A stretch of DNA of 64,000 nt, taken from sequence record OK040170.1. One strand, written 5' to 3'. The notes below the pieces were generated by a model. That model was not told the DNA's origin. It was given only the letters and a program-made list of their open reading frames with translations, and did no database searches. Below are positions 40,884-59,166 of this stretch, one piece after another; position 1 is the stretch's first letter, and each line of letters begins with the position of its first letter. The position numbers and the translations under genes were made by a program.

Positions 40884-43445
40884 ATGGTAGAGTTTAAGAT
40901 CACTCGATACAGTCACTATTTCTCAGTGGCGGCGATAACTGCCAAGGCTCGCGGATTCCGTAGGTCTATAGCAGAGACGCTTATCGAGAGTAACCTAACC
41001 AAGAAACGTGGACGCTTTGTCCAAGAGCAAAAAAGGATCTATGCTCGTCGTGACTTGGAAAGAGAAGAAATCTGTTTCCATGATAACCTCTGGGAAGAGT
41101 TCTATCAAAAGGCGATGTATGAGGGATTCAATGAAGACTCTTTTGAGATTGACGTTGTCCCGATGTACGAGCCTGTTAAGTTTGAGATGTCAATAGATGC
41201 AACGCCATGGCCAGAGCAATTGCCTGTAATTGATTTCTGTCTTGCAGAAGGGAAACAGAAAGTCGTAACCGCCCAGCCTGGGTTCGGTAAAGCTCAATCC
41301 TTAGATGCGTCTATCAAAGTCCCTGGCGGTTGGAAACGAATGGGTGACATTTCAATTGGGGACAGAGTTATTAGTCGCGACGGTACTGAATGTAACGTCA
41401 CAGGTGTATTCCCGCAAGGGGTAACTGAATTATGGAGGGTACATTTTGCAGATGGCCGGTTCACAGACGTTAACCCGGATCACCTGTGGGAAATACGGAT
41501 GCGGTCAAATGAAGGTTCTCAGGTAATAGATACTCGGGAAATAAAACGTCGTTTAGATCTTAACAATGATAGGTCTAAACGGATAACTGTTCCGCTATGT
41601 GTTGCCGAGGAGGGCGTGGCTAAAGACTTCCTTATTGACCCTTATGTTCTAGGGGTTGCATTGGGTGACGGAAATATAACTGAGCGGGGAGTTTCGATAT
41701 CTAAACCAGATAAGTTTATCCGTGAAAGGATTTCTGGTTTGTTACCTGAAGATCTGCGAGTATCTGAGATCAAGTCGACTGAGGGTATGACATTCTCTAT
41801 CGTTAGATCTAGTACATCCGGTCCGAATAACTCCATTGTTTCCGCTTTTAATCAGCTTGGTTTGGCTGGGAAGCGGTCTTGGGAGAAATTCATCCCGGAA
41901 GAATATCTGCACGGTTCAGCTGAACAAAGAAGGGAGTTACTTCGTGGGTTAATGGACACGGACGGGACGGTTGATGGTAAAACCACCGCTACTTTTTCGA
42001 GTACGTCCTACGAATTAGCAAAAGGAGTTCAGTACCTAGTTCGCAGTCTAGGGGGAATCGCCAGTCTTTCCAGTAGGATTCCAAAGTTCACTTACAAAGG
42101 GGAAGTAAAGGAAGGTCGTAAGGACTATCGTCTGATTATACGGACTAAGACCCCGACTGACCTATTTGCGTTACCTCGTAAACTGAATCAGACCTGTGGC
42201 GAGAACCAATATCGTGAGCACTTAAGGTTGGGTATTACTGCAATTGAAGTTTTGCCCGATGCTCCTACTCAGTGCATCATGGTAGATCATCCGGAACACT
42301 TGTACGTTACTGATGATTTTATCGTGACTCACAATACGATGATCTCCCTTTACGTTGCCGCCCAGATGGGTGTACGGTTCGCCGTCGTTACATTAGGTGG
42401 CTACGAAGACCGATGGGTTCCTGAGATGTATCGTCTCTTAGGATTTGAGCCTAGCGAAGTTCGGTCTTGTTGCGGTTGTACTAAACTCTATAAGCTTCTA
42501 CGTGAAGTTAAAGAGACTGGGATTCCTGATGTTAAAGCAATCTTCCTCTCCACTGCAACGTTGCGTGATTTCTTCAAGAATTACAAAAACGGTAAGGTGG
42601 TAGGTACGGGTTGCGAAGATATTGATCCCCGTGACATTTGGGAAGTACTGGGCGTTGGTCTAAGGATCACTGACGAAGCTCACAAAGACTTCCATGCAAA
42701 CTTTATAGCTGATCTCTTTAGTCATGTTCCTAGGACTATTTATCTGACCGCTACGTTGTTCTCTAATCAGGACTTCATGAAGCGAATGTACGAGATTTTA
42801 CTACCTCGTAAGTTCCGGAAAGAAGGCGGTAAGTTGAATGTCTACGTTGAGACTGTTCGTGTTCTGTATCGTCTCAAAGACCCTAGTAAGGTTAGGTTCA
42901 ATGGCGGACAAGGGAGTTATTCCCACACGGCTTATGAAGCGTGGATAATGAAAGATGCCGAAAGAGAAAAGAACTACATCGAAGCTATCTATAAGTACGC
43001 TTTGAATCAATGGGTTCTGAGTAAACTGGACGGCCACAAACTACTGATCTTTGCTGCTACGATAGAGCTTTGTCAGAAAATCAGGGACTTGTTACAACAA
43101 CGACTACCTGACCTGATTATCAATAGTTATACGGCTGGGGATGATTATCAGATTCTTCTGGATTCTGACATCATCGTTTCTACAATCGGTAAATCCGGTA
43201 CTGCAGTAGATATTCCTGACTTGACTCAGGCTATCATGACCGTAGCTATCGATTCACCGAATGCTAACGTTCAGGCGTTGGGTCGTTTACGTGAACTGAA
43301 GGGTGACAAGAAGTTCCCTCAGATCTTCCATTACTTTGTCTGTATGGATATTCAGAAACAGATCGACTATGCCAAGAGTAAGGAACGGCTGTTCAGCAAT
43401 CGTGTAACGAAGGTTAGGACAGAACACTTACCTGGTGTCATTTGA
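40884..43445 (+). CDS. SF2 helicase (phiKZ gp75-like) containing an intein
   Basis: Walker A AQPGFGK/T, DEAH, YLTAT, QALGRLR; start ATG 40884 behind GAGGA. Confidence 0.88.
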   Translation: MVEFKITRYSHYFSVAAITAKARGFRRSIAETLIESNLTKKRGRFVQEQKRIYARRDLEREEICFHDNLWEEFYQKAMYEGFNEDSFEIDVVPMYEPVKFEMSIDATPWPEQLPVIDFCLAEGKQKVVTAQPGFGKAQSLDASIKVPGGWKRMGDISIGDRVISRDGTECNVTGVFPQGVTELWRVHFADGRFTDVNPDHLWEIRMRSNEGSQVIDTREIKRRLDLNNDRSKRITVPLCVAEEGVAKDFLIDPYVLGVALGDGNITERGVSISKPDKFIRERISGLLPEDLRVSEIKSTEGMTFSIVRSSTSGPNNSIVSAFNQLGLAGKRSWEKFIPEEYLHGSAEQRRELLRGLMDTDGTVDGKTTATFSSTSYELAKGVQYLVRSLGGIASLSSRIPKFTYKGEVKEGRKDYRLIIRTKTPTDLFALPRKLNQTCGENQYREHLRLGITAIEVLPDAPTQCIMVDHPEHLYVTDDFIVTHNTMISLYVAAQMGVRFAVVTLGGYEDRWVPEMYRLLGFEPSEVRSCCGCTKLYKLLREVKETGIPDVKAIFLSTATLRDFFKNYKNGKVVGTGCEDIDPRDIWEVLGVGLRITDEAHKDFHANFIADLFSHVPRTIYLTATLFSNQDFMKRMYEILLPRKFRKEGGKLNVYVETVRVLYRLKDPSKVRFNGGQGSYSHTAYEAWIMKDAEREKNYIEAIYKYALNQWVLSKLDGHKLLIFAATIELCQKIRDLLQQRLPDLIINSYTAGDDYQILLDSDIIVSTIGKSGTAVDIPDLTQAIMTVAIDSPNANVQALGRLRELKGDKKFPQIFHYFVCMDIQKQIDYAKSKERLFSNRVTKVRTEHLPGVI
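41292..42335 (+). mobile_element. class 3 intein with LAGLIDADG (DOD) endonuclease, 348 aa
   Basis: Ala1 start, NPDHLW block B, LGVALGDG and LRGLMDTDG, TQCIMV block F Cys, VTHN end, Thr +1. Confidence 0.92.
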
Positions 43446-43497
43446 ATCATAGGCGGAGGGGAAACCCTCCGATCTATTTTGTTTTAGGAGAAATAAC

Positions 43498-43929
43498 ATG
43501 ATCGATCGTATCAAACTTAAAATATTGGGTAGAGTGGGTTCTGGTAAGACTTCCGTATTGCAATTTATTAAGCATAAGCACGGACTGGTCTCTAATGATC
43601 CTAATGTTAACGCTATTTCACTGGAGCGGGCATTGGGCGTTATGGATGAGATTAAACGAGGTTTGCTCAAAGAGATTAATGTTAAGATCGTGAGCAAGTC
43701 AGAACCTGTGTCCGGATTAAAGAATGGAGATATGGTATTGGTTATTGAAGGTAATTTGTCCCGTGCCATTAAATGCCAATTCATGCTGGATGTAATTATC
43801 CCAGCATTAACTAGTCAGGGAATTAAATTCTCCATTGCTAGCGATCTTTCTGCTCACGTAGATAATCCTGCTGTCTTCCCTCTCGATAAAATCGATGTCT
43901 CCTACGAAGAATTATACCCAAGGAACTAA
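43498..43929 (+). CDS. small P-loop-containing protein
   Basis: GRVGSGKTS Walker A; no clear Walker B. Confidence 0.55.
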   Translation: MIDRIKLKILGRVGSGKTSVLQFIKHKHGLVSNDPNVNAISLERALGVMDEIKRGLLKEINVKIVSKSEPVSGLKNGDMVLVIEGNLSRAIKCQFMLDVIIPALTSQGIKFSIASDLSAHVDNPAVFPLDKIDVSYEELYPRN

Positions 43930-43930
43930 C

Positions 43931-44422
43931 ATGTTCGATTATGTTGAATGCAATGATGCTAACCAATTCTTTATTCTGGCTTCGGAAAACAGCTTACATC
44001 TCCCTCGTGGGATTATGATGCGTACCATCAGAAGTGCTGCCGATGAGCCTGATTATAGTTTCAAAGGTGTCTTAGTTTACGCTAATGGTAAATGTTGTGC
44101 GCTCGGTTGTATTACCAGGAAGAAGCCAGAGGCTGCGTACAGTCTTATGCTTTACGTAAAGACCTGGTTACGCGGCATGGGTATCGGTTACGAATTAGTC
44201 CGGCAGTTAATCAAAGCGGCAGAAGGTCGTCGTGTATTCTGTTTTCCTTGGGATAGCAGAAGCGTTATCTTCTATCGTAAATGCGTCGATAAAGAAATCG
44301 TTACGTTAGATAACTTCCATGCGTATGAACGAAGATTAGTTAGCGATGAAAGTCTTCAATGGACTTTAGGCTCGGGGGATAATAATGGCAATCGTAAGGG
44401 TGTTGAAGTCCAACGTATTTGA
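43931..44422 (+). CDS. GNAT acetyltransferase-like protein
   Basis: [16 protein letters not shown] (motif A) and SVIFYRK; start ATG 43931. Confidence 0.7.
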
Positions 44423-44840
44423 AAGTGATCGGGAGATCATCGGAGTTACAGTTAACTGCGTCGGTGTTGCCGGGGCGGGGAATGCTAAAGAATGGAAGGA
44501 GCGCTATCCTGAGCAATATGCCAGGTACAATGCGCTATGTCGTAAAGGTAAGTTTTTCCCTGGTAGTCTCTTGTTGATGCCAACTAACGACGGGTCTGGT
44601 AAAAAGATCCTCCTGATGGCGACCAAGAAACACTGGAAAGATAAATCTGAAATGGAGTGGGTGGCTCGTATATTCTCGGCGCTAGCGGCACGATGTGAGG
44701 AGTTTAACATCGACGAGCTGGCTATACCCTATCCCGGCTGCGGTCATGGTGGATTGAAACGTAGTGAGGTCTTCGATGTCATTCACAAGGCTATGGAAGA
44801 TACGCTCGTAGAAATCGATCTGCACGACTATCGTTCTTAA
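44385..44840 (+). CDS. macrodomain protein (DarG/Appr-1-p-like)
   Basis: [21 protein letters not shown] and [13 protein letters not shown]. Confidence 0.85.
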
Positions 44841-44901
44841 ACAACAAACGAGTAGGGCAAACGCCCTACTCTATTCACAATCGCTTATAGGGCGTCTAAT
44901 C

Positions 44902-45960
44902 ATGGGTTATTACTCAGTCCTTATCTTCTTTCCTGGTTTATTAATTATTCTGGGATCTAAGTATTTCTTTCCTCGTCAAATTACCAGGAAGGAGTTCATG
45001 GTTCAGCTGGGGTGCCTTGTTGTCTCGACTGCTATAGCGACTGCAGCATTGTCTGCCGGTCAGTTATACAAGACATCTGATTTCAATATCCTAAACGGCG
45101 TAGTTACTGATAAGAAGCGGGTAGAAGTTTCATGCGAACATCAGTACCAGTGCGACGAAATATGCTCAGGTACCGGTAAAAATCGAAGCTGTACTCCAGT
45201 CTATTGCGATGAGCACGATAACGACTGGGATTACAACGTTTACACTACCGTCGGTAAGTTTGAAATAAAGCGACTGGATGATCAGGGGGCTCGTACACCG
45301 CCTCGTTGGTTAGCGGCTAAGATTGGCGAGCCTGCTGCCAAAGTAGAATCGGTCACCAACTATACGTTAATCGATGATGAGCGTTATAAGGCTGAGGAAG
45401 CGAGTGAACTTAAGTACAAGGGTAAGTTACCTGATTATCCTAAGACTGAGGATTACTATCGCTATAATCGTATCGTAAATACCACCCCGTTCTCGTTCGG
45501 TTATTTGAACAACTACCTCAATCGAATGCTGATTGAATACGGTGCGAAGAAACAACTGAACGTTATCCTGGTTATTACCGAAAATGATCCTGACTACTGG
45601 AAGGCACTTCGTAGCCACTGGAAAGGGGTTCGGAAAAACGATGTTGTATTAGTTTACGGTATCGGGGATAATAATGAGATCAAATGGTTCGAAGCAGAGA
45701 CATTCGCTGACGGGGAAGGTAATCGTAGATTGATTATTGATCTGGAAGGGATGGCGCGGAACAATCGTTTGGGTTACGATCTTGTACATCATCAGTTTGA
45801 ACATATCGTTACCGAGTATGTCCGTAAACCGAACGCTGAGTTCGCGTATATGGCCAGTAATTACTCTCCGCCTATTTGGTGGATTGTTCTAATCATTTTC
45901 ATCAACATGCTCGTCACTGGTGGCGTGGCTATATACTTCAAAGACAACAGAGTCTTTTAA
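44902..45960 (+). CDS. membrane protein with TPM(DUF477)-like C-terminal region
   Basis: Two N-terminal and one C-terminal TM segments, CEH..C..C Cys cluster, NVILVI...HWKGVRKNDVVLV. Confidence 0.55.
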   Translation: MGYYSVLIFFPGLLIILGSKYFFPRQITRKEFMVQLGCLVVSTAIATAALSAGQLYKTSDFNILNGVVTDKKRVEVSCEHQYQCDEICSGTGKNRSCTPVYCDEHDNDWDYNVYTTVGKFEIKRLDDQGARTPPRWLAAKIGEPAAKVESVTNYTLIDDERYKAEEASELKYKGKLPDYPKTEDYYRYNRIVNTTPFSFGYLNNYLNRMLIEYGAKKQLNVILVITENDPDYWKALRSHWKGVRKNDVVLVYGIGDNNEIKWFEAETFADGEGNRRLIIDLEGMARNNRLGYDLVHHQFEHIVTEYVRKPNAEFAYMASNYSPPIWWIVLIIFINMLVTGGVAIYFKDNRVF

Positions 45961-45977
45961 TTAAGGAATAAAATACC

Positions 45978-46559
45978 ATGGGCGTTTCTGCAGATAAAAC
46001 CGCTTTCTCTTTCGCTAAAGCTTTAGTAGTAGCGATGTTACTTTCCGGTGCTGTGATTGTAGGGGTTACAGTCGCGTACGTATCCGCTTACAACGAAGGT
46101 AATAAGAGCGAAGAACAGATCAAGTATCTGAATACTGAATCAGAGAACCGTCTGAGCTCCTACACGAACTCTGTGCTGGAGCAAGCACAAATTCCAGAGA
46201 AGTACAAGGACAACTTGAAAGACGTCCTTAAAACGGCTCTGGAAGCTCGTTATGGCGATACCGGTAATAAGTCTACTATCTCCTTTATCCAGGAGCACGC
46301 AGTTAACTTCGACAGCAAGATGTACGAAAACATTCAGGCGACTATCAAGTCTGGCCGTGAGGAGTTCCGTATCTCTCAAACTCGTAAGATTGAAACCTGC
46401 CGTAACTACCGGACTTCCCTGGGTTACTTCTGGAAAGGGACTTTCTTGAAGTTTGCCGGTTATCCGAAAGTTAACCTGGACGATGTCTGCGCCCTGGTGA
46501 GCGATGAGCGCTCCATGGAAGCATTCAAAACCAAAAAGACATCACCAATCAAACTGTAA
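45978..46559 (+). CDS. LemA-like membrane-anchored protein
   Basis: N-terminal TM then YN, helical body, C-terminal RNY...FW..FLKFAGY. Confidence 0.6.
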   Translation: MGVSADKTAFSFAKALVVAMLLSGAVIVGVTVAYVSAYNEGNKSEEQIKYLNTESENRLSSYTNSVLEQAQIPEKYKDNLKDVLKTALEARYGDTGNKSTISFIQEHAVNFDSKMYENIQATIKSGREEFRISQTRKIETCRNYRTSLGYFWKGTFLKFAGYPKVNLDDVCALVSDERSMEAFKTKKTSPIKL

Positions 46560-46625
46560 TAATAAAACCCTCAGAGAGCCGCTTACGCTCTCTGAGGGCC
46601 TATAACGTTTAATAGAGGAAGTGTA

Positions 46626-47183
46626 ATGGAAACTCGTATGGTCTTTAGTAACCTTCGTCGTACTGCGGGTAAGTTGTTCCGCAATGTAGGCTTTCGTGAG
46701 GAGGGTGCACAAACTAACCTCAACTCACTGAATACGGCTCAGTACGAAGTAGTGACTTTCTTGAATCAGTCACTTAATGCTGGCGTTAACAATATTATCA
46801 AAAGTATTGCCAGTGAGTCCACTGTAGAGGAAATGGCGCATTTATTCCGTCATGCCCATACGTTGGGTTTCCTCAAGTGTGACGTCGCCGTCCTGACCTG
46901 TAAGCGAGGTTTTCAGAAGGGGTCGTTCTACGTCTACCTTCATGAAGAAAGCCTGAGTAAGAAAGTTTACCTGGAATGGGTAATTCACCAGGTAGGGCTG
47001 ATGTGGGGAGTTAACCTTCCGATTAAGGTTGTAACCGATTGTCAGTACGTTAGTGACACTCGAGTTAACCCTAATGAACTAAACGATCTTGATCACTTGA
47101 GTTTGTACTATCAACTCATCTCGTTCGGGGTAGATGTTTATCCTGGTAATGCGGGTAAAGAATCGGCATTTCTGATTAAGTAA
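46626..47183 (+). CDS. hypothetical protein (185 aa)
   Basis: GAGGA SD. Confidence 0.75.
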   Translation: METRMVFSNLRRTAGKLFRNVGFREEGAQTNLNSLNTAQYEVVTFLNQSLNAGVNNIIKSIASESTVEEMAHLFRHAHTLGFLKCDVAVLTCKRGFQKGSFYVYLHEESLSKKVYLEWVIHQVGLMWGVNLPIKVVTDCQYVSDTRVNPNELNDLDHLSLYYQLISFGVDVYPGNAGKESAFLIK

Positions 47184-47191
47184 TTAGTTAG

Positions 47192-47316
47192 CTCTCATTT
47201 TTTACGTACGTTTCAATTATGTGTCAGAACTTGGTCACGGCCCGGAGGGTCTGTGACTATTAGGGGTTTTAGAGTGAACTAGGATGACCAAAGGGAAGAC
47301 GAAGTGAGCTCCCTAA
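47192..47316 (+). repeat. dispersed structured module, copy 2 of 3
   Basis: CTCTCATTTTTTACGT, GGTCAC-GGCCC-gga-GGGTC-T-GTGACT (47233-47258), ATTA, TAGGG(47261)...CCCTA(47315) enclosing a GA-rich hairpin. Confidence 0.85.
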
Positions 47317-47435
47317 ACGCGTGGATAATTAACCCCATTTAAACTAAATTGATATTCACTGGTAGATTAAGTTCTACTGGTGATTATTGATCTATTTTGT
47401 AAAATTACCAATATACCTCCATTGGATCTTAGGTA

Positions 47436-47443
47436 TATATTAC
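47436..47443 (+). promoter_or_regulatory. TATATTAC early promoter
   Basis: GGTATATATTACCAGATTGA. Confidence 0.7.
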
Positions 47444-47463
47444 CAGATTGAATAGATTACTAC

Positions 47464-48027
47464 TTGGATAACAGGAGAAGTAAATTGAAACACTTATCAA
47501 TTACCGCTGGTTGGGGTAGCGTTAAGAACACTACGATCATCAGCTACGAAGATAACGATACTTTATCTCGTGGATTACTCCATACGTTCATTAACGAAGC
47601 AAGTGGAAGTTTCTGCCTGGATCATCTGGAAGCTATCGCTAAAGTGGTACGCGGTATTGTTAGCGGTGAACTGCGCACAGATGAGGACATCGTTGTAGTC
47701 CCTTCTTATCTCACTGTTTCATACAGCCAAGAACGTTCAGTTTGGACCAGGGCCCGTTACCAGATTTTCTCAGGTGGCGAGTTAATCTGGAAAGGGATTT
47801 TCGCATTAGATAGTAATGGCGACTTCGATACTGCATGGATGGTGCGCGCTTGGGTATCGAAAGCACTTATTCGCGTCGACCATAATTTGATAGGCTATGC
47901 TGCTGACATCATGGAACGTGTCCGGAGTAGCGATAACCTCAAGAAAGAATTGGTAATAGAGCGCTTTGTCTTTGAAGGCAAAGAGATTATTGTCAACGTG
48001 TCTAAAAGCTACCAAGGAGCTAAGTAA
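47464..48027 (+). CDS. hypothetical protein
   Basis: TTG start; an alternative TTG behind AGGAG at about 47485. Confidence 0.7.
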   Translation: MDNRRSKLKHLSITAGWGSVKNTTIISYEDNDTLSRGLLHTFINEASGSFCLDHLEAIAKVVRGIVSGELRTDEDIVVVPSYLTVSYSQERSVWTRARYQIFSGGELIWKGIFALDSNGDFDTAWMVRAWVSKALIRVDHNLIGYAADIMERVRSSDNLKKELVIERFVFEGKEIIVNVSKSYQGAK

Positions 48028-48287
48028 TGTCCAGAGAAAGTATCGTTAGTGTTACACTGAAATCCGAATACTGCGATGTTAGTGAGAAAGAGTTTTCTTA
48101 CTACTGCGGCGAAGAGCGTTCTCTCATGTGCGTTGCTGATGAGATTGCTGAATGGATCGAAGAGTGTAGCGTAATGCTCTGCCCTGAGCCAGACGACATC
48201 CAAGAGGCGTTGGAAAACCTTTATCTCAACGGCTCGTCTAAAATGGATACACTGGATGAAACGGAAGTCTTGTTCCGGAAAGTTTAA
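48027..48287 (+). CDS. hypothetical acidic protein (86 aa)
   Basis: AGGAG SD, TAATG junction. Confidence 0.75.
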   Translation: MSRESIVSVTLKSEYCDVSEKEFSYYCGEERSLMCVADEIAEWIEECSVMLCPEPDDIQEALENLYLNGSSKMDTLDETEVLFRKV

Positions 48288-48298
48288 AGGGGCCTGTT

Positions 48299-48871
48299 GT
48301 GGAAAACAAAGAATACATTTTAACGGTTAAAGAAAACGTTATCCGTGTTAAGTTACCGGGCGAGACTACGAAAGAAGAGTTCGTTCGCAAAGTCTCCAAA
48401 GAAATCCGTAAACAACTCAGCCGCGTGGCAAGTAAAGTCATCGTGGAAGGGTTGACGTCCCAATTACCGGAATACCTGGGTAAGTATTATCAGGAAACCG
48501 AGCAGTACAATTACGCGATGCTCTCAGCGGCTTATAACCTGTCGCTGTACGTTATCCCTATCGATGATACTCAGGTAGAATTAAAACCGGTTATACGTTC
48601 TCTGGGAGCGTGTCGTGGGCACATTACGTACAAAGGTCAGAAGAGTCCGTTCATTCTCATGGAAGGAGATACTCTAGAAGAGGCGGTAACAAAAGTCCAT
48701 CGTCGCTTGGCTACTAAAATCAAGGAAACTAATTTCCCTGAAGACCTGGAGTTAATCGAGTCAGGTCTAGCTAAAGATTCCATTACGGAAATCCTGGGCT
48801 ACTTTGCAAATGATGGTGAGCGCGGGTCAACTATCGAACATCCGTGTGGCATCGTTCTCTTTATCGAATAA
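48299..48871 (+). CDS. hypothetical protein (190 aa)
   Basis: GTG start, AGGGG SD. Confidence 0.75.
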   Translation: MENKEYILTVKENVIRVKLPGETTKEEFVRKVSKEIRKQLSRVASKVIVEGLTSQLPEYLGKYYQETEQYNYAMLSAAYNLSLYVIPIDDTQVELKPVIRSLGACRGHITYKGQKSPFILMEGDTLEEAVTKVHRRLATKIKETNFPEDLELIESGLAKDSITEILGYFANDGERGSTIEHPCGIVLFIE

Positions 48872-48883
48872 TTACCTGGAGCA

Positions 48884-50038: not shown

Positions 50039-50102
50039 ACCCGTCATAGGCCCGTAGGATTAACCTACGGGCTACTATAATCTTTTTTAGAAGGAAAATA
50101 AA

Positions 50103-50696: not shown

Positions 50697-50700
50697 TAAT

Positions 50701-50830
50701 CTCTCATTTTTTACGTCACTTCTCTTTAGTTTGTCAAAACAATACCACTCAGGTCACGGCCGTAGGCCTGTGACTAATAAGTACCCGTATGACTGAAGAA
50801 CGTAGTGATGAAAGGAATACATCTTGGGTA
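50701..50830 (+). repeat. dispersed structured module, copy 3 of 3
   Basis: CTCTCATTTTTTACGTC, GGTCAC-GGCC-gta-GGCC-T-GTGACT (50752-50775), AATA, TACCC(50782)...GGGTA(50830) enclosing GACTGAAGAACGTAGTGATGAAAGGA (50791-50816). Confidence 0.85.
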
Positions 50831-50882
50831 AAAAGAGAGTTAAGTAAGGTTAAATTAACTCTATTGATAAAGAGTAATAATC

Positions 50883-51437
50883 ATGAATAATACTCATTTA
50901 GTAATAACTGTAACTAATGGAATGAACAGTTTAACAGATACATTACGAGTAGAGCTGGATAACTTTCCGGTAGCTCGTATCAAGGGATGGGTAAAGAGCA
51001 TCAGTGAACGATATGGATTAGCTACTCTACCTACGCTGTACTACATGGACTGGGGGAAAGTGGTTGATGACATTAACGAAAACCCTCATACCGTTCTCAA
51101 TGTAGGAGGAGACAGCAGTATTACCTGGGAAGCGGGTAATACATGGCCAAAGGGTGTAAACTCTGATGGTACGTTATCGGCTGGACGTAACATTAAGTTC
51201 CATCCAACCACCTGGTCAGAAATCATGTTTGCTACCCATGATAACTTTTTAGAAGTAGAAGGTTTCATTCTGGTAGATAAAACCGGGGCTGTTTATGAGT
51301 ACGGTATCTTAAAGGAACGTAATTTCATTAACCTGGGTGGATTTGATTTCCTCTCTAGCGATTACAAAGCGTTTGCTTACCATCGTAGAGAAGGCGTAGT
51401 CACCCTGATCGAACGCCATAGTCCACCAACCGCTTAA
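50883..51437 (+). CDS. hypothetical protein (184 aa)
   Basis: First ORF after module copy 3. Confidence 0.7.
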   Translation: MNNTHLVITVTNGMNSLTDTLRVELDNFPVARIKGWVKSISERYGLATLPTLYYMDWGKVVDDINENPHTVLNVGGDSSITWEAGNTWPKGVNSDGTLSAGRNIKFHPTTWSEIMFATHDNFLEVEGFILVDKTGAVYEYGILKERNFINLGGFDFLSSDYKAFAYHRREGVVTLIERHSPPTA

Positions 51438-51454
51438 TTAATTAGGAGCACGAC

Positions 51455-51745
51455 ATGATCGAAGTAACTTGTGATTCAGTAGCAGATAACTTATTCTCCG
51501 TAACGTTGAGTAAGCCATCTGAGGGCAGGTTTAATTCTAACTACTCTCGTAAAGTTTCTTTCCGTATCGATACGAAAGTATACTCCATTCGCTTAGCGAG
51601 CATCTCTGCGGTTCACCAGGCTGCACGCAACGGCGGTGAAGGGGTGATTACTATCATCACCCAATCGGCGAAGTACACGTTCAACTACCGTAAGGGCGGC
51701 CAGGAAGCAATCAATGAGTTCTTGGCTGCATGGGAACAGATCTGA
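51455..51745 (+). CDS. hypothetical protein (96 aa)
   Basis: AGGAG SD. Confidence 0.75.
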   Translation: MIEVTCDSVADNLFSVTLSKPSEGRFNSNYSRKVSFRIDTKVYSIRLASISAVHQAARNGGEGVITIITQSAKYTFNYRKGGQEAINEFLAAWEQI

Positions 51746-51999
51746 TGGAATACTCCATTATCAACCCTAATGGGAAACTCCCTGTACTACGTATCAAGGT
51801 CAGTGGTGTTTTGAGTCATTACTCGATTATGGGCATTACGGGTATCAGCTACGCCAAAATGGCCATGCCGTTAGGTACTGTACAAGTGACGATTGACCGG
51901 GAAGGAACAAGTAATATCTTCCAGGTTCCGGTAAAAGATGTCCCATTAGTAGATGAGATCGTTACTCTCTGGGTAAATATCATCAACGGTATCAAGTAA
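51745..51999 (+). CDS. hypothetical protein (84 aa)
   Basis: TGATG junction favours ATG 51745. Confidence 0.7.
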   Translation: MEYSIINPNGKLPVLRIKVSGVLSHYSIMGITGISYAKMAMPLGTVQVTIDREGTSNIFQVPVKDVPLVDEIVTLWVNIINGIK

Positions 52000-52122
52000 G
52001 TAATTTGTCATAAACCCACCTACCCTAACCGGTAGGTGGGAGTTGTATTATCCTAAATCTTTTTCTTTTGTCATTACGTTAAAATGTACGCATGTTTGAC
52101 TTAATGTAGACATTAGGGAATT

Positions 52123-53037
52123 ATGAGGGAGTTTCGGAAAATGGCCGGGACAAAGAAATTAATCATTACACCAACCTTCAAACTAAAAAAGTTATTGAAG
52201 GATATGGTAGGCTCAGAGCCAGGTTTTAATCTAGTCTGGCAAATGGCCGTAGACTACATGGTGAAATGCATCTTGTCTGGTGCCCGTAAAGAAACGCTTC
52301 CCGAATTCATGCAGGAAGCATACGGCGAACTAGATGGTTCCACGAGTTATTACTTCGCAGATCTGTTGGGGTTCAAATTAGTTGAGTCCTCGTACAGAAA
52401 AGATTCATTTACATTCTCCTTGGCATTATCTGGGGAATCTAAAAACGTCCCTGATCTTTCTAATGTTACGAAGATCTCTCGTACACCTTACGATAACGGA
52501 TGGATGAATGGCGTAGTTTGGTTCCGGCCTGTACACTGCGCATTTTACTACGTTAAAGCAACCCGTAACCCATTAGCTGACTTTGTACAGGAAAGTGCAT
52601 ATCTGGTCGGCAAACACCACAAGGTGAATATCTACCAAAAGGTATTTGATGCGGGTGATGATAAACGTATTAAAGGGATTTACTTTGAAGTAGCCGATCG
52701 GAAGGAATCCGAAGATGTAGGTAGTCAGATGTCTAACTACGTCAGAAACAATAGAGGGATCTACGAAGAGGGAGAAAGACGTGTCGGGGAATTATTACCT
52801 GACCGTAAAGATCAACCCAATACCCAACACCAGGGGAATGGGAAGAAGCCTGACTTTGGTATCGGGAGAAATCAGGTATGTGTAAAAGGTAAGGAATACC
52901 GTAATGTAGTTTCGTACCACAAAGAGACTCGTTTACCGATGCCGCAGATCTACCGTCGATTGAATTCCCGTCATCCTGAATGGATTGATTGGTTCTTCAT
53001 CGGCTCTCCTAAAGATACCAGAAGGAAGTCAGTGTGA
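52123..53037 (+). CDS. hypothetical protein with C-terminal HTH/NUMOD-like DNA-binding segment
   Basis: VKGKEYRNVVSY...IYRRLNSRHPEWIDWFF resembles homing-endonuclease DNA-binding tails; no nuclease motif recognised. Confidence 0.55.
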   Translation: MREFRKMAGTKKLIITPTFKLKKLLKDMVGSEPGFNLVWQMAVDYMVKCILSGARKETLPEFMQEAYGELDGSTSYYFADLLGFKLVESSYRKDSFTFSLALSGESKNVPDLSNVTKISRTPYDNGWMNGVVWFRPVHCAFYYVKATRNPLADFVQESAYLVGKHHKVNIYQKVFDAGDDKRIKGIYFEVADRKESEDVGSQMSNYVRNNRGIYEEGERRVGELLPDRKDQPNTQHQGNGKKPDFGIGRNQVCVKGKEYRNVVSYHKETRLPMPQIYRRLNSRHPEWIDWFFIGSPKDTRRKSV

Positions 53038-53288
53038 AAGTATTGGAAAGTAAAGAAGGACACGGTGTTTTCCTTATCCAAACGTACAAGTGCGTTTTCG
53101 ATGCAATCAAGTGGTTCGCAGACCAACTAGGTTCAGAAGACCTAGATGAAAGCATCTTAGAGAAATCACTGACCGGGATCGCTATAGAGACAGGGGTAAG
53201 CTTGTTTCCTGCGATCTTAGAAGTCATGGAGACGGACAAGGTAATGTCCTACCGAGTCATTAATCTCGATGGTCTTAAACTTAGCTAG
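53034..53288 (+). CDS. hypothetical protein (84 aa)
   Basis: GTG start overlapping the previous stop. Confidence 0.6.
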   Translation: MKVLESKEGHGVFLIQTYKCVFDAIKWFADQLGSEDLDESILEKSLTGIAIETGVSLFPAILEVMETDKVMSYRVINLDGLKLS

Positions 53289-53356
53289 TCCATAAACCGG
53301 CTGGGGAAACCTGGCCGGTCTATGTTGTTTATGTACAATTAAGAGGAAACACCACC

Positions 53357-53515
53357 ATGCCTAGTACCAGTAAGAAACAAGAGCAATTCATGGCAGTCGC
53401 TGCCCACGACAAAGAGTTCGCTGAAGAAGCAGGCATTCCCCAGAAGGTTGCTAAAGAATTCCATAACGCCGATAAGCGTAAGAAGAACAAGAAAGCGATC
53501 TTGGCAAAACGTTGA
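53357..53515 (+). CDS. small phage protein (52 aa)
   Basis: GAGGA SD; MPSTSKKQEQFMAVAAHDKEFAEEAGIPQKVAKEFHNADKRKKNKKAILAKR*. Not in the ORF track. Confidence 0.75.
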   Translation: MPSTSKKQEQFMAVAAHDKEFAEEAGIPQKVAKEFHNADKRKKNKKAILAKR

Positions 53516-53526
53516 TTTAGATCTTT

Positions 53527-53550
53527 TTTTACGCAACAAGTTTAAGTATG
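53527..53550 (+). promoter_or_regulatory. TTTTAC-N14-TATG promoter-like element ahead of the RNA array
   Basis: TTTTACGCAACAAGTTTAAGTATG; same spacing as at 5661, 13112, 30334 and 47200. Confidence 0.6.
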
Positions 53551-53661
53551 TAGAAGCTGCATCAAGTAATCATTTAGTTCAATTAACTCCAGGGTCGATT
53601 GTCGGTAACTAAGTGAGATTCAGCTACAAGCGGGGATGGATCCCCACTAAGTATTGGAGAG

Positions 53662-53758
53662 CTTTAAGGGTACGATCTCAATCGTCCGGGTTGTGGAACA
53701 ACTTCCGCACACTAGTGCGTTGGTTTAGGGTTCGACTCCCTACCGGAATGCCTTAAAG
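53662..53758 (+). ncRNA. tRNA-like cloverleaf on an extended stem
   Basis: T-arm TAGGG-TTCGACT-CCCTA, D-like GTTG/CAAC, CGCAC-acta-GTGCG, TCCGG/CCGGA, outer CTTTAAGG/CCTTAAAG; no CCA. Confidence 0.55.
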
Positions 53759-53830
53759 GTAGCGCATGATAAATGCGAGCAACTAACACGAGGCGACATT
53801 ACGCGCCTACTCCAATCAAGACGAATTCCT

Positions 53831-53915
53831 GGTAGGTTACTCAAGCGGCAACGAGAACAGACTGTAAATCTGTTGCCTTCGGGCTTCGATGGTTCGAGTC
53901 CATCACCTACCACCA
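53831..53915 (+). tRNA. tRNA-Tyr(GTA)
   Basis: GGTAGGT/ACCTACC acceptor, ACAGA-ctGTAaa-TCTGT, long variable arm, GATGG-TTCGAGT-CCATC, encoded CCA. Confidence 0.95.
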
Positions 53916-53922
53916 AAACAAT

Positions 53923-54001
53923 GAACCGAGTAGCTCAACTGAATAGAGCACCGTCCCGCTAAGACGGAGGTTAGAGGTTTAAGTCCTTTCTCTGGTTCCC
54001 A
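53923..54001 (+). tRNA. atypical tRNA (GCT anticodon in a short-variable-arm body)
   Basis: TAGCTC...GAGC D arm, CCGTC-ccGCTaa-GACGG, AGAGG-TTTAAGT-CCTTT, bulged acceptor, CCA. Confidence 0.65.
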
Positions 54002-54007
54002 AACAAC

Positions 54008-54171
54008 GACACTGATCTCAAGAAGATCGGCAGCCTTACCCAACCGTGTCGCGGCGATCGCCAGCAATCGGTATTTAGTGCACGGTACGTAGACAAGCCT
54101 TTGAGCGAAGTTCCGCGTCCCGAGCCGTCGGCAGCCCATAAGCCTCAGTGAAATTCTGAGGGGTGTCACCA
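54008..54171 (+). ncRNA. 164-nt tRNA-like RNA with large central insertion and CCA end
   Basis: GACACT/GGTGTC-A-CCA, GATCT-caaga-AGATC, CCTCAG-tgaaatt-CTGAGG. Confidence 0.6.
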
Positions 54172-54175
54172 AAGA

Positions 54176-54241
54176 TGTCCTCATTGCAGAGGGAGGTTGA
54201 TTGTAGTCAGCCTGTTGTGAAACGAATCTGCAGTGGGGACG
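54176..54241 (+). ncRNA. three-way-junction structured RNA
   Basis: 14-bp GTCCTCATTGCAGA/TCTGCAGTGGGGAC enclosing AGGTTGA/TCAGCCT and a small hairpin. Confidence 0.5.
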
Positions 54242-54261
54242 CCTTCCCTTTCTAAAGTTTT

Positions 54262-54350
54262 ATCGAGATAGTCTACTTAAACCTAGTGAGGAATTCGACG
54301 GCGGATACGTCCGTAAGACTGCGTAGGTTCGATCCCTACTCTCGATCCGA
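54262..54350 (+). ncRNA. tRNA-like-domain RNA (acceptor plus T arm, no canonical D arm)
   Basis: ATCGAGA/TCTCGAT, AGTCT/AGACT helix, GTAGG-TTCGATC-CCTAC. Confidence 0.6.
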
Positions 54351-54363
54351 TTTAAAAGAACAA

Positions 54364-54490
54364 TGACGCCTGCACGTAAAAAGCAAACTGCGCCAGCTGG
54401 GCGCGGTGGGGGCTAAGTGCCATGAACCATGCGGCGAGATCGCGGCGAAGGTATAAGATAGCCAGGTGCGATTCCTGGGGGCGTCACCCA
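54364..54490 (+). ncRNA. 127-nt tRNA-like RNA with expanded variable region and CCA end
   Basis: TGACGCCT/GGGCGTCA-C-CCA, ACTGCGCC-agctg-GGCGCGGT, CCAGG-tgcgatt-CCTGG. Confidence 0.6.
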
Positions 54491-54492
54491 AT

Positions 54493-54590
54493 TAGGTACG
54501 TAAGTCTCAAGTGGCCGCATTCATCTGCCCGCATTCATCTGCCCGCTGCCTAAAGACTTTGTGGAATGGATTCCGCGTACCTAAAAACCA
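54493..54590 (+). ncRNA. tRNA-like-domain RNA carrying a 14-nt tandem repeat
   Basis: TAGGTAC/GTACCTA, AAGTCT/AGACTT, GTGGA-atggat-TCCGC; CCGCATTCATCTGC x2 at 54515-54542. Confidence 0.55.
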
Positions 54591-54619
54591 GTAAGTTAAA
54601 CTAATAGGACGATTCTACG

Positions 54620-55129
54620 ATGACTATCCTTAATCGCGATATGATCATGCAAGAACTCTTAAACTCAATAGATCCTGATGCAGGCCCATGTCTTGGGCTT
54701 AGCAGGGAAAAAGAGTTAGCCGAAATTTATACGCTAGGATTCAAGGCACCTCGCCAAACGGGGTCTACGTATTGGCTTATCGAAAAACTCATTGAGGATC
54801 GTAACTCAATTGTAATTTTGATTAATAGCGACTTTAAAGAACACTTCCTAGCGGATGTTGAGAAATACCCTAAAGTCATTTTCGACAAATGTGTTCAATA
54901 TGGACCATCTGTTGAACGAGGTATTCTTAATGGCGATAAAGACAATATAGTCGATCGCTGTTTCACTGCCAGGGAATTCCTAAACGCCGACCTAGAACGT
55001 CACCGCTACGCCACATCGGTCTTCTTTGATGGCGCGTCGACGATTGCTAGTAAGATTAATCTTAATGCGTATTACCGAAAGTTGGCCAAAGAAGTAAAAG
55101 GTTATCCGGTTACTTGGCTGATTAACTAA
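54620..55129 (+). CDS. hypothetical protein with degenerate P-loop-like motif
   Basis: APRQTGST resembles a terminase-type Walker A; only 169 aa. Confidence 0.55.
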   Translation: MTILNRDMIMQELLNSIDPDAGPCLGLSREKELAEIYTLGFKAPRQTGSTYWLIEKLIEDRNSIVILINSDFKEHFLADVEKYPKVIFDKCVQYGPSVERGILNGDKDNIVDRCFTAREFLNADLERHRYATSVFFDGASTIASKINLNAYYRKLAKEVKGYPVTWLIN

Positions 55130-55138
55130 AGAACACTT

Positions 55139-55446
55139 GATGTGCTGGTAAAGGTTTAGTCGCCTTTTTTAAGATCGTCCGCTAACGATTGATACTAGCG
55201 CATCTTTTTTATTGAAGAATCCCGCCGATCGGGTAGCGTACGTCTGGCGTAGTCATTACTCTAATTGAGTGGGGATACGAGGGGTTTACCAGTCGATCGG
55301 TGGTACCAAACTCCGAGCAGGTTGCAGCCGGCTGGAGTAAATAGGGGACTGCGAGTCCCCAGGTGCATAAAGGCCCAGAAATGGCGCCCGGCACAAGACG
55401 CAGCGCGTCGGTATCGAGAGGGGCTTCGGCCCCTCTCTTTATTTTC
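55139..55446 (+). other. GC-rich structured intergenic region (candidate ncRNA) ending in a terminator
   Basis: GATGTGCTGGT/ACTAGCGCATC junction, CCGATC/GATCGG domain, GGGGACT/AGTCCCC, then GAGAGGGGC-ttcg-GCCCCTCTC plus T-run. Confidence 0.45.
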
Positions 55447-55463
55447 TTCAACGGGAAACTGTT

Positions 55464-55940
55464 ATGAAATTCATACTGGCATTGAATCCTAAAGATCCGG
55501 CAATTAAAGGTTACGAATCAGATCTTCTTAAGATGATCCAGATTATGGATAAACGAGAAGCTACTTACTGGAAAGAGTCAGCTAACTTAGATATCCTTAG
55601 TCGTGAGATGGAGTGTAAAACCTTAGAGGAACGTTGGGTAGACGATACTCAAATACTAATGCTCCTTGTGAGGGGTAATCCTGTAGGTTTCGTTGAGTAC
55701 ACGACCGCAGTAGTTAACGCTAGTTCTAAGTGGCTTTCTATATGTTATCTGTACGTACAACGAGAGTACAGAGGGTTTGGATATGGATCTGCACTAGTTG
55801 ATCAAGTAAGGAACTTTGCCAAGATCCAACAAGTAGATCAGTTATCACTTTCAGTCAAGTCAAGAAATAAACGAGCCATTAAGTTTTACAAGAGATACGG
55901 TTTCTCGGAACAGACTAAGTACTTCTGTATGAAACCTTAA
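55464..55940 (+). CDS. GNAT family N-acetyltransferase
   Basis: LYVQREYRGFGYGSALV and NKRAIKFYKRYGF. Confidence 0.88.
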   Translation: MKFILALNPKDPAIKGYESDLLKMIQIMDKREATYWKESANLDILSREMECKTLEERWVDDTQILMLLVRGNPVGFVEYTTAVVNASSKWLSICYLYVQREYRGFGYGSALVDQVRNFAKIQQVDQLSLSVKSRNKRAIKFYKRYGFSEQTKYFCMKP

Positions 55941-55954
55941 TTAGGAGAGTAACG

Positions 55955-56155
55955 ATGATTATCTTCCCTGGGATTACTGCGGTAGAGAAAAGTCAACTGA
56001 GCGTCGGTACGCTCATTAATTATACCGGGCTAGGACTCAAGTTTAAATGTGATGTCTGCGAAGAGAAGTTAACCGTAAGCTATTACAAAGACAGTAAACC
56101 CGAAGATCGGATTATCTGTTCAAAGTGCAGCGGTTCTTCTTTCAGCACCTACTAA
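55955..56155 (+). CDS. small zinc-ribbon protein (66 aa)
   Basis: CDVC...CSKC; AGGAG SD. Confidence 0.7.
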   Translation: MIIFPGITAVEKSQLSVGTLINYTGLGLKFKCDVCEEKLTVSYYKDSKPEDRIICSKCSGSSFSTY

Positions 56156-56196
56156 GCAAACATAGGGAGAGGGAAAACCCTCTCCCTCTATAATGT

Positions 56197-59166
56197 TTAA
56201 ACGCCGTCAGGAATATTGAGCATGGAGTTAACCTGATCCGTAGACCACTCGAGAATATCGAATGTACGGGAGTTAATGTTCTCCTGGTCACCGGTATCTA
56301 AGACGAACTCAAATACGAACGTAGGAGCGTCCTGATCAATCCTGTCAATACGACCTATCGCTTGTTCCATGTTGTAGCTACGGAACGGCACGTTCAATGC
56401 CAGGATGGTATTTGCCATTGTCATCGGTACGGCACTGGAAAGAGATTGGAATGTAGTAACCATCGCCCGCTCTTTACCCGTTTCGAACTTCTTGACTTCA
56501 CTATCAGCAGTACCTTCAGAACTACCGTGAACTACCAGTGGTTGAATGCCTTTACCTTTAAGATATTTGGCACACTCATCAACTACCTTAACGTACGAAG
56601 TAAAGACGACAGTTTTCTTCTCAGCCTCCTCGATATACTTCTCGATTTTAGCATGACGCATAACTGCCTCAACTGCTTCCTCACGCCGTTTGGATACAAG
56701 TGACCCAAGACACTCCCCTCTGACTTTCAATTCAACATACTTGATTACAGAGAGATAGGATCGCAGTTTCTTCCTACGTTCATTATCCAAAGCAGGTAAA
56801 AGAACATTCTTCTCGTACTTATTAACAAATACGATAGTGTCCCGGATTTTAGGATAATCAGTAGTCTTAACTATCACGTTGAACATCTTACGATAAAGCG
56901 CGAACTGTTGCTTCTGCTGAGGACTCTTCAACGCCTTCTCAAAGATGGCAAGGGACTCGTTGTAATACTTCAGAGCATTACCTCGCTGACCTTCCCAGTA
57001 CTTCAAACGATCCTTGATAAACTTCTCCATATCTTTCTTGAGAGTAGTCAACAAGAAAGGAGTTGGGTCGGGTATCTTAACAGGGACACGTTCGATCTTA
57101 GGTTCGGTTTTAACAACCTCAGCTTTGAAGACGATATTACCCAGACGATGACTAATGATGTCGAATACCTTATTACTGGACTTACCGTATAACTTACGGA
57201 AAGCCTCTGCAACATCGTCGTTCATGAGCGGATCGATTGTCCTTAGCATCGTGATCGCTTCAGTACCGTATGCTTTAAGCGGGGTTGCCGATGCCCAAAT
57301 AGTCGACATGGGTTCGATGATCTTCCATGCTTCGTACATGATGTTATTTCGACCACTCGTCTCTTCGTTCAACGTGTGGGATTCGTCGAGTATTAACGTG
57401 ACTTTCTTACCACGGAACTTACTCGCAATCTCTTTGAAATAACGTAGGTCTTCTACGTGGAAGATCAGGAAAGGAGGAGGATTTCCTTTTAACTCTTTGT
57501 CCCGATCGTAGATCCAGTACTTAGGAGGATTACGAAAATCTTCCTTCATCGACTTTTCCCAAACACGATAGACCGCACGTTTGAGCGTTATGATAATCGT
57601 GAAGTCTGACCCTAACATCTGGGACAGAGCCAACGAGGTATAGGTGTTGTGAGTCACGATAAAATCATCAGTAACGTACAATCTCCTAGGGTGACTAATC
57701 GAAATACATTGGGTTTCCTCCATCCCTATTTCGATTATCTTTTCAACCCGTAAAGAAAGATGCTCGCTGTACTGATTACTTAGCTCGGCCCGCTGAAGCT
57801 TCCTAGGTAAAGTGAAAAGTTCCGATGCCTTTTTAATCCGAATATTAACTCGGTAGTGTAAAGCTCCGGTTTTCTTTTCTCCCTTGTAAACATAAGTTGG
57901 AACCTTAGTAGATATTCTGGCAATACCGCCAAGGCTACGAACAAGGTACTGCACGGATTTTGCTAAGTTCTCCGAAGAAGATGAGTAACTAACGCACGGA
58001 CTATTTAAATCAACCGTCCCATCAGTGTCCATCAATCCCTGAAGTAGCTCAAGTCTTTGCTTTATAGATCCATTTAGATAGATCTCAGGTACGAATTTAT
58101 CGACAGCATTTTTACCAGCAAGACCTAAATCTCGTAACCTCCACATCAATGAATTTTCATTCACCCCATCTTTGCAGATTATGGAGAACGTAAGACCCCG
58201 ACTTGAAGGTAATTCCGAAATAACTAAGTCGTTAGGTAGTCTGGATGATACTTTATCCCAGATGAACTTATCGTATTTAGAAACCGTCACAGCCTTTTCG
58301 CCGATATGACCATCCCCAAGAATAACGCCCAAGATATATGGGTCGATCGGGAGATCGATATCCGGAGAATCTTCCGGAATAGCTAAAGGAACCGCCATTC
58401 TTCTAGATATACTGGTGCCACGCTCCAATCTTTCCTTTATTTCTTCGGTGGTAAGTAAAAGGGATCCCTTGTCCGCACGGTAACGAATTTCCCAAAGGTG
58501 TTCTGGGTTAACGTCAGTGTACCGACCATCAGCAAAAATAACACGATAAACCCTAGTTACGCCTTGAGGGTGAACCCCAGTTACATTTGTAACTGTGCCA
58601 TCCTGAGCTATTACGGGATCGCCGACTTTGATATCCCCCATGCGCTTCCAGCCACCGGGCACTTTAATCAACGACGACAGAACCTGAGCTTTACCAGTAC
58701 CAGTTCCCATAGCCAACGTATAGCCACGAAGACGGAATCTTGGTACTACGTTATCGTATTTATCAAAGAACTCATCCTGGTGTTCCTTAGGCGTGAATTT
58801 GAACAATGATAACTTAGAACGATTAAGGATTGGATCGTGTTCTTCTTGAGTACTCTTCAGCCAGGTATTTTCTAACATGGCGTTTTTAACGGACACCAGA
58901 GATCGTTTGGAGGTCTTGTTTAACTTAGGGAACTCCAATAACTTGTCGACAATGTAAACGAACTCTACTGCGAAGAAACTATAAAACTCAATCTCGTAGG
59001 GAGAGACTTTAATGAACATCGATTTGGCGATCCTGTTTGTCCGCCACAGAGAATAGATGTCCGCAAACATGTTCTTGGTTTTCAAAGCCGAAACAGTAAT
59101 CTTCCCATTACTCTCCACGACCTTAACCGAACCAATTAAAGAACGAATTGGGTTAAGAATGCCCAT
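56197..59166 (-). CDS. SF2/SNF2-like helicase (phiKZ gp203-like) containing an intein
   Basis: Walker A MGTGTGK/T, LDESH, SATP, EQAIGRIDR; TATG upstream on its strand. Confidence 0.85.
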   Translation of the reverse strand: MGILNPIRSLIGSVKVVESNGKITVSALKTKNMFADIYSLWRTNRIAKSMFIKVSPYEIEFYSFFAVEFVYIVDKLLEFPKLNKTSKRSLVSVKNAMLENTWLKSTQEEHDPILNRSKLSLFKFTPKEHQDEFFDKYDNVVPRFRLRGYTLAMGTGTGKAQVLSSLIKVPGGWKRMGDIKVGDPVIAQDGTVTNVTGVHPQGVTRVYRVIFADGRYTDVNPEHLWEIRYRADKGSLLLTTEEIKERLERGTSISRRMAVPLAIPEDSPDIDLPIDPYILGVILGDGHIGEKAVTVSKYDKFIWDKVSSRLPNDLVISELPSSRGLTFSIICKDGVNENSLMWRLRDLGLAGKNAVDKFVPEIYLNGSIKQRLELLQGLMDTDGTVDLNSPCVSYSSSSENLAKSVQYLVRSLGGIARISTKVPTYVYKGEKKTGALHYRVNIRIKKASELFTLPRKLQRAELSNQYSEHLSLRVEKIIEIGMEETQCISISHPRRLYVTDDFIVTHNTYTSLALSQMLGSDFTIIITLKRAVYRVWEKSMKEDFRNPPKYWIYDRDKELKGNPPPFLIFHVEDLRYFKEIASKFRGKKVTLILDESHTLNEETSGRNNIMYEAWKIIEPMSTIWASATPLKAYGTEAITMLRTIDPLMNDDVAEAFRKLYGKSSNKVFDIISHRLGNIVFKAEVVKTEPKIERVPVKIPDPTPFLLTTLKKDMEKFIKDRLKYWEGQRGNALKYYNESLAIFEKALKSPQQKQQFALYRKMFNVIVKTTDYPKIRDTIVFVNKYEKNVLLPALDNERRKKLRSYLSVIKYVELKVRGECLGSLVSKRREEAVEAVMRHAKIEKYIEEAEKKTVVFTSYVKVVDECAKYLKGKGIQPLVVHGSSEGTADSEVKKFETGKERAMVTTFQSLSSAVPMTMANTILALNVPFRSYNMEQAIGRIDRIDQDAPTFVFEFVLDTGDQENINSRTFDILEWSTDQVNSMLNIPDGV
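57646..58689 (-). mobile_element. class 3 intein with LAGLIDADG (DOD) endonuclease, 348 aa
   Basis: Ala1 start, NPEHLW, LGVILGDG and LQGLMDTDG, TQCISI, VTHN end, Thr +1. Confidence 0.92.

Follow-up and report, generated by a model that had tools for sequence, protein, structure and literature searches.

We identified two inteins in a 64,000-nucleotide (nt) stretch of OK040170.1, the 272,720-base-pair record of the jumbo phage Serratia phage BUCT660 (genus Moabitevirus). This stretch is referred to below as the window, and all positions are window positions. Each intein is 348 amino acids (aa) long, has the features of class 3, and interrupts the P-loop of a different superfamily 2 (SF2) helicase. 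The reading we favor, at a probability of roughly 0.8, is that these are two functional-looking members of one huge P-loop intein family that share an ancient common ancestor, reached BUCT660 separately by allelic homing, and afterwards underwent conversion of a short patch at their 3' ends. In GenBank both genes are annotated as plain helicases and the intein is named in neither. Moabitevirus is assigned to the Chimalliviridae (2026 NCBI taxonomy), the family also given in a first-pass annotation that was made from the letters of this DNA.

Two class 3 inteins in helicase P-loops

The genes, their inteins and the landmark residues are as follows:

40884..43445, + strand: helicase A precursor gene, UvsW-like SF2 helicase (annotated coding sequence, CDS; matches to DEAD and phrog_16)
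40884-41291 and 42336-43445, + strand: N-extein and C-extein of helicase A
41292..42335, + strand: intein 1 in helicase A, 348 aa, class 3 type, with LAGLIDADG endonuclease
Landmarks of intein 1, + strand: Trp66 codon region 41481-41489; LAGLIDADG motifs 41649-41672 and 41946-41972; Cys328 42267-42275; Thr-His-Asn (THN) 42327-42335
56197..59166, - strand: helicase B precursor gene, SNF2-like SF2 helicase (annotated CDS; matches to Helicase_C, ResIII and phrog_62)
58690-59166 and 56197-57645, - strand: N-extein and C-extein of helicase B
57646..58689, - strand: intein 2 in helicase B, 348 aa, class 3 type, with LAGLIDADG endonuclease
Landmarks of intein 2, - strand: Trp66 region 58492-58500; LAGLIDADG motifs 58309-58332 and 58012-58038; Cys328 57706-57714; THN 57646-57654

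Both inteins are stop-free translations of 348 residues, in frame within longer helicase open reading frames (ORFs), and both are placed exactly between the Walker A Lys (after G-x-G-K) and Thr. They begin with Ala-Gln and end with LYVTDDFIVTHN. Class 3 inteins are defined by the lack of an N-terminal nucleophile together with Trp at B:12, Cys at F:4 and Thr at G:5 (PMC3196547; PMC5050341). Position 1 is Ala in both BUCT660 inteins, rather than a Cys, Ser or Thr nucleophile. His64-Leu65-Trp66 of block B supplies the Trp at B:12, and Thr326-Gln327-Cys328 of block F supplies the Cys at F:4; in an alignment this Cys falls opposite the one in block F of M. chimaera DnaB-1, a class 3 intein. Thr346-His347-Asn348 provides the Thr at G:5 and is followed by a nucleophile, the +1 Thr. 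Cys328, Thr346, His347, Asn348 and the Asp of the second endonuclease motif are invariant across 15 relatives; Trp66 and the Asp of the first motif are kept in at least 90% of them. As judged from these residues, both inteins are of class 3 type. The earlier description of two 348-aa P-loop inteins with Ala1, the Trp, the Cys and Thr-His-Asn between Lys and Thr was thus borne out by the translations and their ORF context, and a recount agrees that the two inteins match at 51 of their first 70 residues.

The endonuclease motifs read LGVALGDG and GLMDTDGTV in intein 1 and LGVILGDG and GLMDTDGTV in intein 2, with the acidic residues kept. Pfam LAGLIDADG_3 matches both (E values of 3e-11 and 4e-11), so the DOD (LAGLIDADG) endonucleases first proposed for them are upheld. 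An AlphaFold2 model of intein 2, built with the 15 relatives in the alignment, has a mean predicted local distance difference test score (pLDDT) of 91.9. Foldseek matched this model at a probability of 1.00 to PI-SceI, TliVMA, PI-PfuI and the mini-inteins 6RIY and 6BS8, and matched I-DmoI as well. The N- and C-terminal segments are predicted by the model to form a horseshoe-like Hint fold. The nearest PDB chains by sequence are gp41-1, followed by the class 3 DnaB inteins 6RIX and 6BS8. Each intein would therefore combine a Hint splicing domain with a LAGLIDADG homing endonuclease. If splicing follows the class 3 mechanism, Cys328 would attack the Lys-Ala1 bond, the branch would then move to the +1 Thr, and cyclization of Asn348 would release intact helicases.

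The closest described counterparts are the DnaB-b P-loop class 3 inteins (mycobacteriophage Bethlehem DnaB, M. smegmatis DnaBi1, 6BS8, and M. chimaera DnaB-1, 6RIX), which likewise lack an N-terminal nucleophile, have the Trp-Cys-Thr set and the terminal THN, and occupy a helicase ATP-loop. Unlike these, the BUCT660 inteins reside in SF2 helicases of a nucleus-forming jumbo phage rather than in DnaB. The solved DnaB inteins are mini-inteins, whereas those of BUCT660 keep a full LAGLIDADG endonuclease, and the similarity is limited to the Hint lobes. Among ATPases, phage terminases included, the Lys|Thr junction is the 'classic' site of P-loop intein insertion (Kelley et al., 2016, PMC5050341). 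The related class 3 inteins described in that work occupy the same Walker A junction in various ATPases, but the host proteins and phage group differ from those considered here. A class 3 intein is also present in the SNF2-family helicase of Deinococcus radiodurans; according to work cited in PMC3196547, this Snf2 intein splices via a block F branched intermediate. Its host is bacterial, unlike that of intein 2.

The two host proteins are only distantly related, as had been noted earlier. Their exteins give a non-significant pairwise BLASTP match (E value of 1.3), and each matches SF2 helicase families. The gene for helicase A lies directly 3' of the split RNA polymerase beta genes, and its intein-less orthologue in Moabite (505 aa) is annotated as UvsW-like. 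Helicase B is the orthologue of phiKZ gp203, to which it is linked by a note in the Moabite annotation. The intein-less target sites of the two genes are alike at 13 of 22 nt (plus or minus 11 nt), mainly in GGTAAG|AC. The longest ORF for helicase A opens at 40815 and so has 69 nt ahead of the start annotated at 40884. Relatives are annotated with the shorter form and with a ribosome-binding site before it; the intein coordinates are the same in either case.

Empty sites and homing in Moabitevirus

Intein 1 is carried by three of the eight distinct Moabitevirus phages that match helicase A (BUCT660, 2050HW and Haymo). It is missing as an exact gap of 1044 nt in Moabite, ParM-25, Yaphecito and Kodama. 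Totoro is also without it, as indicated by a BLAST coverage gap (58% query coverage in two pieces, with the junction unaligned). Intein 2 was found only in BUCT660 among nine GenBank records that match helicase B (one of seven distinct phages), and 2050HW, the closest relative of BUCT660, is without it. We identified an exact empty site for intein 2 in eight complete, near-identical alleles (six from GenBank relatives and two from public contigs). Empty alleles are joined precisely at the Lys|Thr codon boundary, minus 1044 nt. Because near-identical phages have the same genes without these 1044 nt, and precisely joined, both inteins are inserts.

All intein-less Moabitevirus alleles of either gene encode the Walker Lys by AAG. 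AAA precedes both BUCT660 inteins (41289-41291 and 58690-58692) and intein 1 of 2050HW, and is also found in five metagenomic intein-bearing alleles; Haymo retains AAG before intein 1. The AAA codon could reflect co-conversion from the donor or could mark a target preference. In the 2050HW record, intein 1 contains one extra C (GAGATC to GAGATCC, equivalent to window position 41770 and at about position 1256 of L002). With it, the helicase gene is annotated as two separate CDSs. If real, the extra base would inactivate helicase A, but it is more probably a sequencing error.

A word search of public sequencing runs recovered the intein 2 region at 0.86-0.89 of sampled words in five runs, four of them silage metagenome runs of one study and the fifth a run of another organism. 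Over 57652-58689 (1038 nt of intein 2), contigs of both studies have at most one difference, and in the same contigs the adjoining N-extein has eight differences in about 320 nt (58727-59047). Kodama alleles account for five of these eight. A further public run, X8, has an exact empty site at helicase B. The same intein 2 thus occurs in unlike flanks, and we infer that it entered the BUCT660 lineage recently by homing. The silage and 'organism B' carriers have Kodama-type alleles at 58727-58807 and BUCT660-type alleles within about 36 nt of intein 2, a pattern expected if the intein homed into a helicase B resembling that of Kodama and the co-conversion tract on the N side was very short.

A second candidate tract, in BUCT660 itself, lies mainly on the other side of the insertion:

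57217..57586, - strand: possible co-conversion tract, eight synonymous differences in the C-extein of helicase B, plus the third base of the Lys codon at 58690

We counted a BUCT660 change as near-private if five or more of six intein-less alleles had a different base there. Nine of the ten such changes lie at 58690 and within 57217-57586; they fall in 430 nt of the 2526-nt alignment, for which the binomial P is about 1e-6. All nine are synonymous and, among the eight complete intein-less alleles, eight are private to BUCT660; the change at 57586 is common with Kodama. An unsampled donor may have left this cluster beside intein 2 by co-conversion. A clean tract of donor origin was considered and dropped, as other intein 2 carriers have the common alleles at 57478 and 57586.

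Sporadic presence, precise empty sites and an element that is more conserved than its flanks are together the signature of an actively homing element. Each endonuclease would cleave the gene of its own helicase where a co-infecting relative has the allele without the intein, and repair would copy the intein into that allele. The diverged endonuclease specificities and the interference against co-infecting relatives that were suggested in the first-pass annotation are plausible.

The P-loop intein family and the ancestry of the two inteins

Among 1.84 billion cluster representatives searched, 19,398 match intein 2 at E<1e-3 and 5,525 at E<1e-30. From the best matches we extracted 257 full-length inteins. 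The insertion is preceded by Gly-Lys in 221 of the 257, Ala is the first residue in 184, and THN is last in all of them. The +1 position holds Thr in 220 and Ser in 35. These inteins have a median length of 348 aa, and 25 are exactly this long. Their hosts include 113 orthologues of helicase A and 36 of helicase B, as well as PhoH-like, SMC-like and other P-loop proteins. The BUCT660 inteins are part of a single very large family, whose target is the Walker A Lys|Thr/Ser junction in many P-loop nucleoside triphosphatases. A scan of IMG/VR for close relatives of intein 2 found none above 46% identity. Related inteins on two IMG/VR contigs (L014:2501-3583 and L021:810-1898) have one in-frame stop codon each, and these copies may be decaying or mis-sequenced.

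Inteins 1 and 2 are about 56-57% identical as proteins (E value of 5e-136) and 57% identical as DNA. We rejected their equal length as a sign of twinship: the pairwise alignment needs four compensating gap positions, so that equal length is not collinearity, and 348 aa is the family median. Among GenBank phage records the two are mutual best matches (56%, compared with about 50% for the next record). Closer relatives of intein 1 are found in metagenomes. Its identity is 71% with the P0015 intein and about 60% with the inteins of P0010, P0011 and P0012; all four proteins are helicase A orthologues that likewise lie downstream of RNA polymerase genes. For intein 2, identity is about 57% to intein 1, to the P0011 intein and to the intein of P0007, a helicase B orthologue.

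Phylogenetic placement rests on a careful IQ-TREE analysis of 32 inteins. We recovered a clade of 13 inteins (support 100/95) in which intein 2 is the first branch. The other 12 group together at 96/87, and include intein 1 with P0015 (100/99) and the helicase B intein P0007. The approximately unbiased (AU) test rejects a clade of intein 1 plus intein 2 (p 0.009) and marginally rejects one of intein 2 plus P0007 (p 0.038). The first-pass annotation had regarded the two inteins as products of an old jump between P-loops, and as each other's closest kin. An old jump is supported at the level of the family, and the two inteins are homologous and anciently diverged, but a private twin pair is not supported. 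By the annotation's own standard of refutation, closest kinship fails for intein 1, which is 71% identical to an intein of an orthologous helicase and 57% identical to intein 2.

The host label changes repeatedly across the tree: the starred branches require five or more changes for helicase A and five or more for helicase B. For many helicase B inteins the nearest helicase A intein is as close as the nearest helicase B intein. The inteins of P0064 (helicase B) and P0109 (helicase A), both from one sequencing run, are 74% identical and are sisters at 100/100. Extein switching between helicases A and B recurs across the family. Similar switching between terminase and Cas4 has been argued for actinobacteriophage class 3 inteins from phylogeny and AU tests, and for one intein of that study a jump was proposed to have occurred via similarity at the common nucleotide-binding site (bioRxiv 10.1101/2025.01.02.630785). 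The helicase A/B switches can be understood in the same way, although here the hosts are two SF2 helicases of chimalliviruses and switching recurs many times. Class 3 inteins have been proposed to be of phage origin (PMC3196547).

At conserved residues, 31.5% of codons are identical between inteins 1 and 2, compared with a chance expectation of 36.7% given phage codon usage. Moabitevirus members differ by about 1%. Because synonymous sites are saturated, the common ancestor of the two inteins is far older than the genus. This ancestor would lie inside the clade of 13, which contains both helicase A and helicase B residents. The extein switch would have occurred deep in that clade and outside the BUCT660 genome, with each intein arriving later by allelic homing from other phages.

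Identical 3' ends, competing explanations and significance

The two inteins share one stretch of identical DNA:

42300..42334, + strand: 35-nt stretch at the 3' end of intein 1 that recurs unchanged at the 3' end of intein 2
57647..57681, - strand: 35-nt stretch at the 3' end of intein 2, the identical counterpart of that in intein 1

Elsewhere in the DNA alignment of the two inteins, the longest exact run is at most 12 nt. A series of 11 identical codons was matched in only 3 of 20,000 shuffles of codon states. Over the last 36 nt, intein 2 differs from intein 1 at one position, compared with 4-11 positions for relatives that encode the same twelve-residue peptide (7 in the sister of intein 1, P0015). 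Contigs of both of the other studies end at the 35-mer, and the loose end continues into intein 1 (42270-42299). The identity is thus not an assembly artefact, and the phages of those studies also carry both inteins and the common stretch. An exact scan of IMG/VR for the 35-mer did not find it. In the simplest reading, the 35-nt identity probably arose by short-patch gene conversion, once both inteins were resident in one genome. The two 35-mers form an inverted repeat with a spacing of about 15 kilobases, and k-mer assemblies of related phages break exactly there. Recombination between them would invert the intervening segment and swap the C-exteins of helicases A and B.

Comparable patches occur in other intein pairs. 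P0015 (helicase A) and P0007 (helicase B) have in common a different 75-nt 3' variant with one mismatch (41 + 33 nt exact). Their contigs are each about 66-68% identical to Moabitevirus and Klebsiella jumbo phages, which is compatible with, although not proof of, an origin in one phage. Raoultella phage VB_ZK_P1 (PV662128.1) has two family inteins in different P-loop proteins (187508-188608, L039, and 42234-43325, L040). These are 62% identical overall and 61% identical as proteins, yet have interior exact runs of 35 and 23 nt. No exact run above 21 nt was found in 19 other pairings among seven clade members. The P0064/P0109 sister pair, from a single run, has no long identical patch, so patch exchange is not universal. 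By tblastn, VB_ZK_P1 has a third family copy, Pseudomonas phage EL has four and Shewanella phage FishSpeaker has three.

Three other explanations were weighed against separate homing followed by patch conversion. The 35-nt identity could result from selection on the nucleotide sequence itself, for example as a DNA or RNA signal, given that a 17-nt core of the stretch is identical in several relatives and that the encoded peptide is almost invariant. We consider this unlikely. Relatives with the same peptide have nevertheless diverged at the nucleotide level, the P0015/P0007 pair shares a 3' variant of its own, and the runs shared by the co-resident inteins of VB_ZK_P1 are in the interior of the element. 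It is more improbable still that a single ectopic jump between helicase P-loops took place within this phage lineage, with the copies then diverging as a private pair. The mutual best matches among GenBank phage records, the equal lengths, the same termini and membership in the same well-supported clade of 13 would all be expected from such a jump. However, intein 1 is 60-71% identical to inteins of orthologous helicases in metagenomes, the AU test rejects sisterhood, intein 2 is missing in 2050HW and in seven other complete alleles, and saturated synonymous sites are difficult to reconcile with a genus whose members are about 1% different.

We give the least credence to the idea that the inteins are no longer selfish and have been kept as conditional-splicing switches of the two helicases. 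An intein in the P-loop blocks ATP binding until it is spliced, and conditional splicing is documented for the mycobacterial class 3 DnaB intein (PMC6195587). Yet presence varies among phages that are >99% identical, the endonuclease motifs are intact, and identical copies of intein 2 are found in differing flanks. Thus, the pattern is that of an actively homing element, not of a fixed regulator.

Several points weigh against separate homing and patch conversion as we describe them. The activity of both inteins is deduced from motifs and from the population pattern. At 57478 and 57586, the two sites of the synonymous cluster nearest to the intein, the other carriers of the identical intein 2 have the common alleles. 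The position of intein 2 in the tree is not firm, given its identity of about 57% to several clade members and the only marginal rejection (p 0.038) of a grouping with P0007; the old A/B switch may therefore have run either way. The ancient relatives are mostly metagenomic fragments.

The inteins themselves are an annotation gain, as they are elements of a well-described class. The only points that go beyond the routine are the natural set of phages with and without inteins and the identity patches between co-resident copies. Our literature search found no paper on Moabitevirus inteins and none on intein homing endonucleases in nucleus-forming phages, and reviews of jumbo phages only touch on inteins. 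Nor did we find, in the literature searched, a description of short identity patches between co-resident inteins. The apparent exchange of such patches is a small point.

A precedent for interference exists in nucleus-forming phages. As summarized in a review (PMC13282480), a homing endonuclease in the contest between phiPA3 and phiKZ nicks the rival phage's polymerase gene. There, the endonuclease of a mobile element hits the homologous essential gene of a relative that co-infects, and intein 2 is in a position to do likewise to intein-less Moabiteviruses. The BUCT660 elements differ in being intein-borne LAGLIDADG enzymes in helicase genes, and their interference is putative. Cultured Serratia phages that are >99% identical and differ only in the presence of each intein provide a natural system for studying homing, co-conversion and possible interference inside the phage nucleus.

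The data show P-loop inteins moving freely between two helicases across jumbo phages. Tentatively, and with somewhat less than even confidence, we suggest a broader claim in two parts: that non-allelic inteins in one phage genome repeatedly swap short patches by gene conversion, and that the identical intein 2 in diverged helicase B backgrounds reveals homing in nature among nucleus-forming phages. Such homing would imply DNA contact between co-infecting genomes. If patch exchange does take place, it would keep the splice-junction segments of co-resident inteins alike, and could aid new extein switches.

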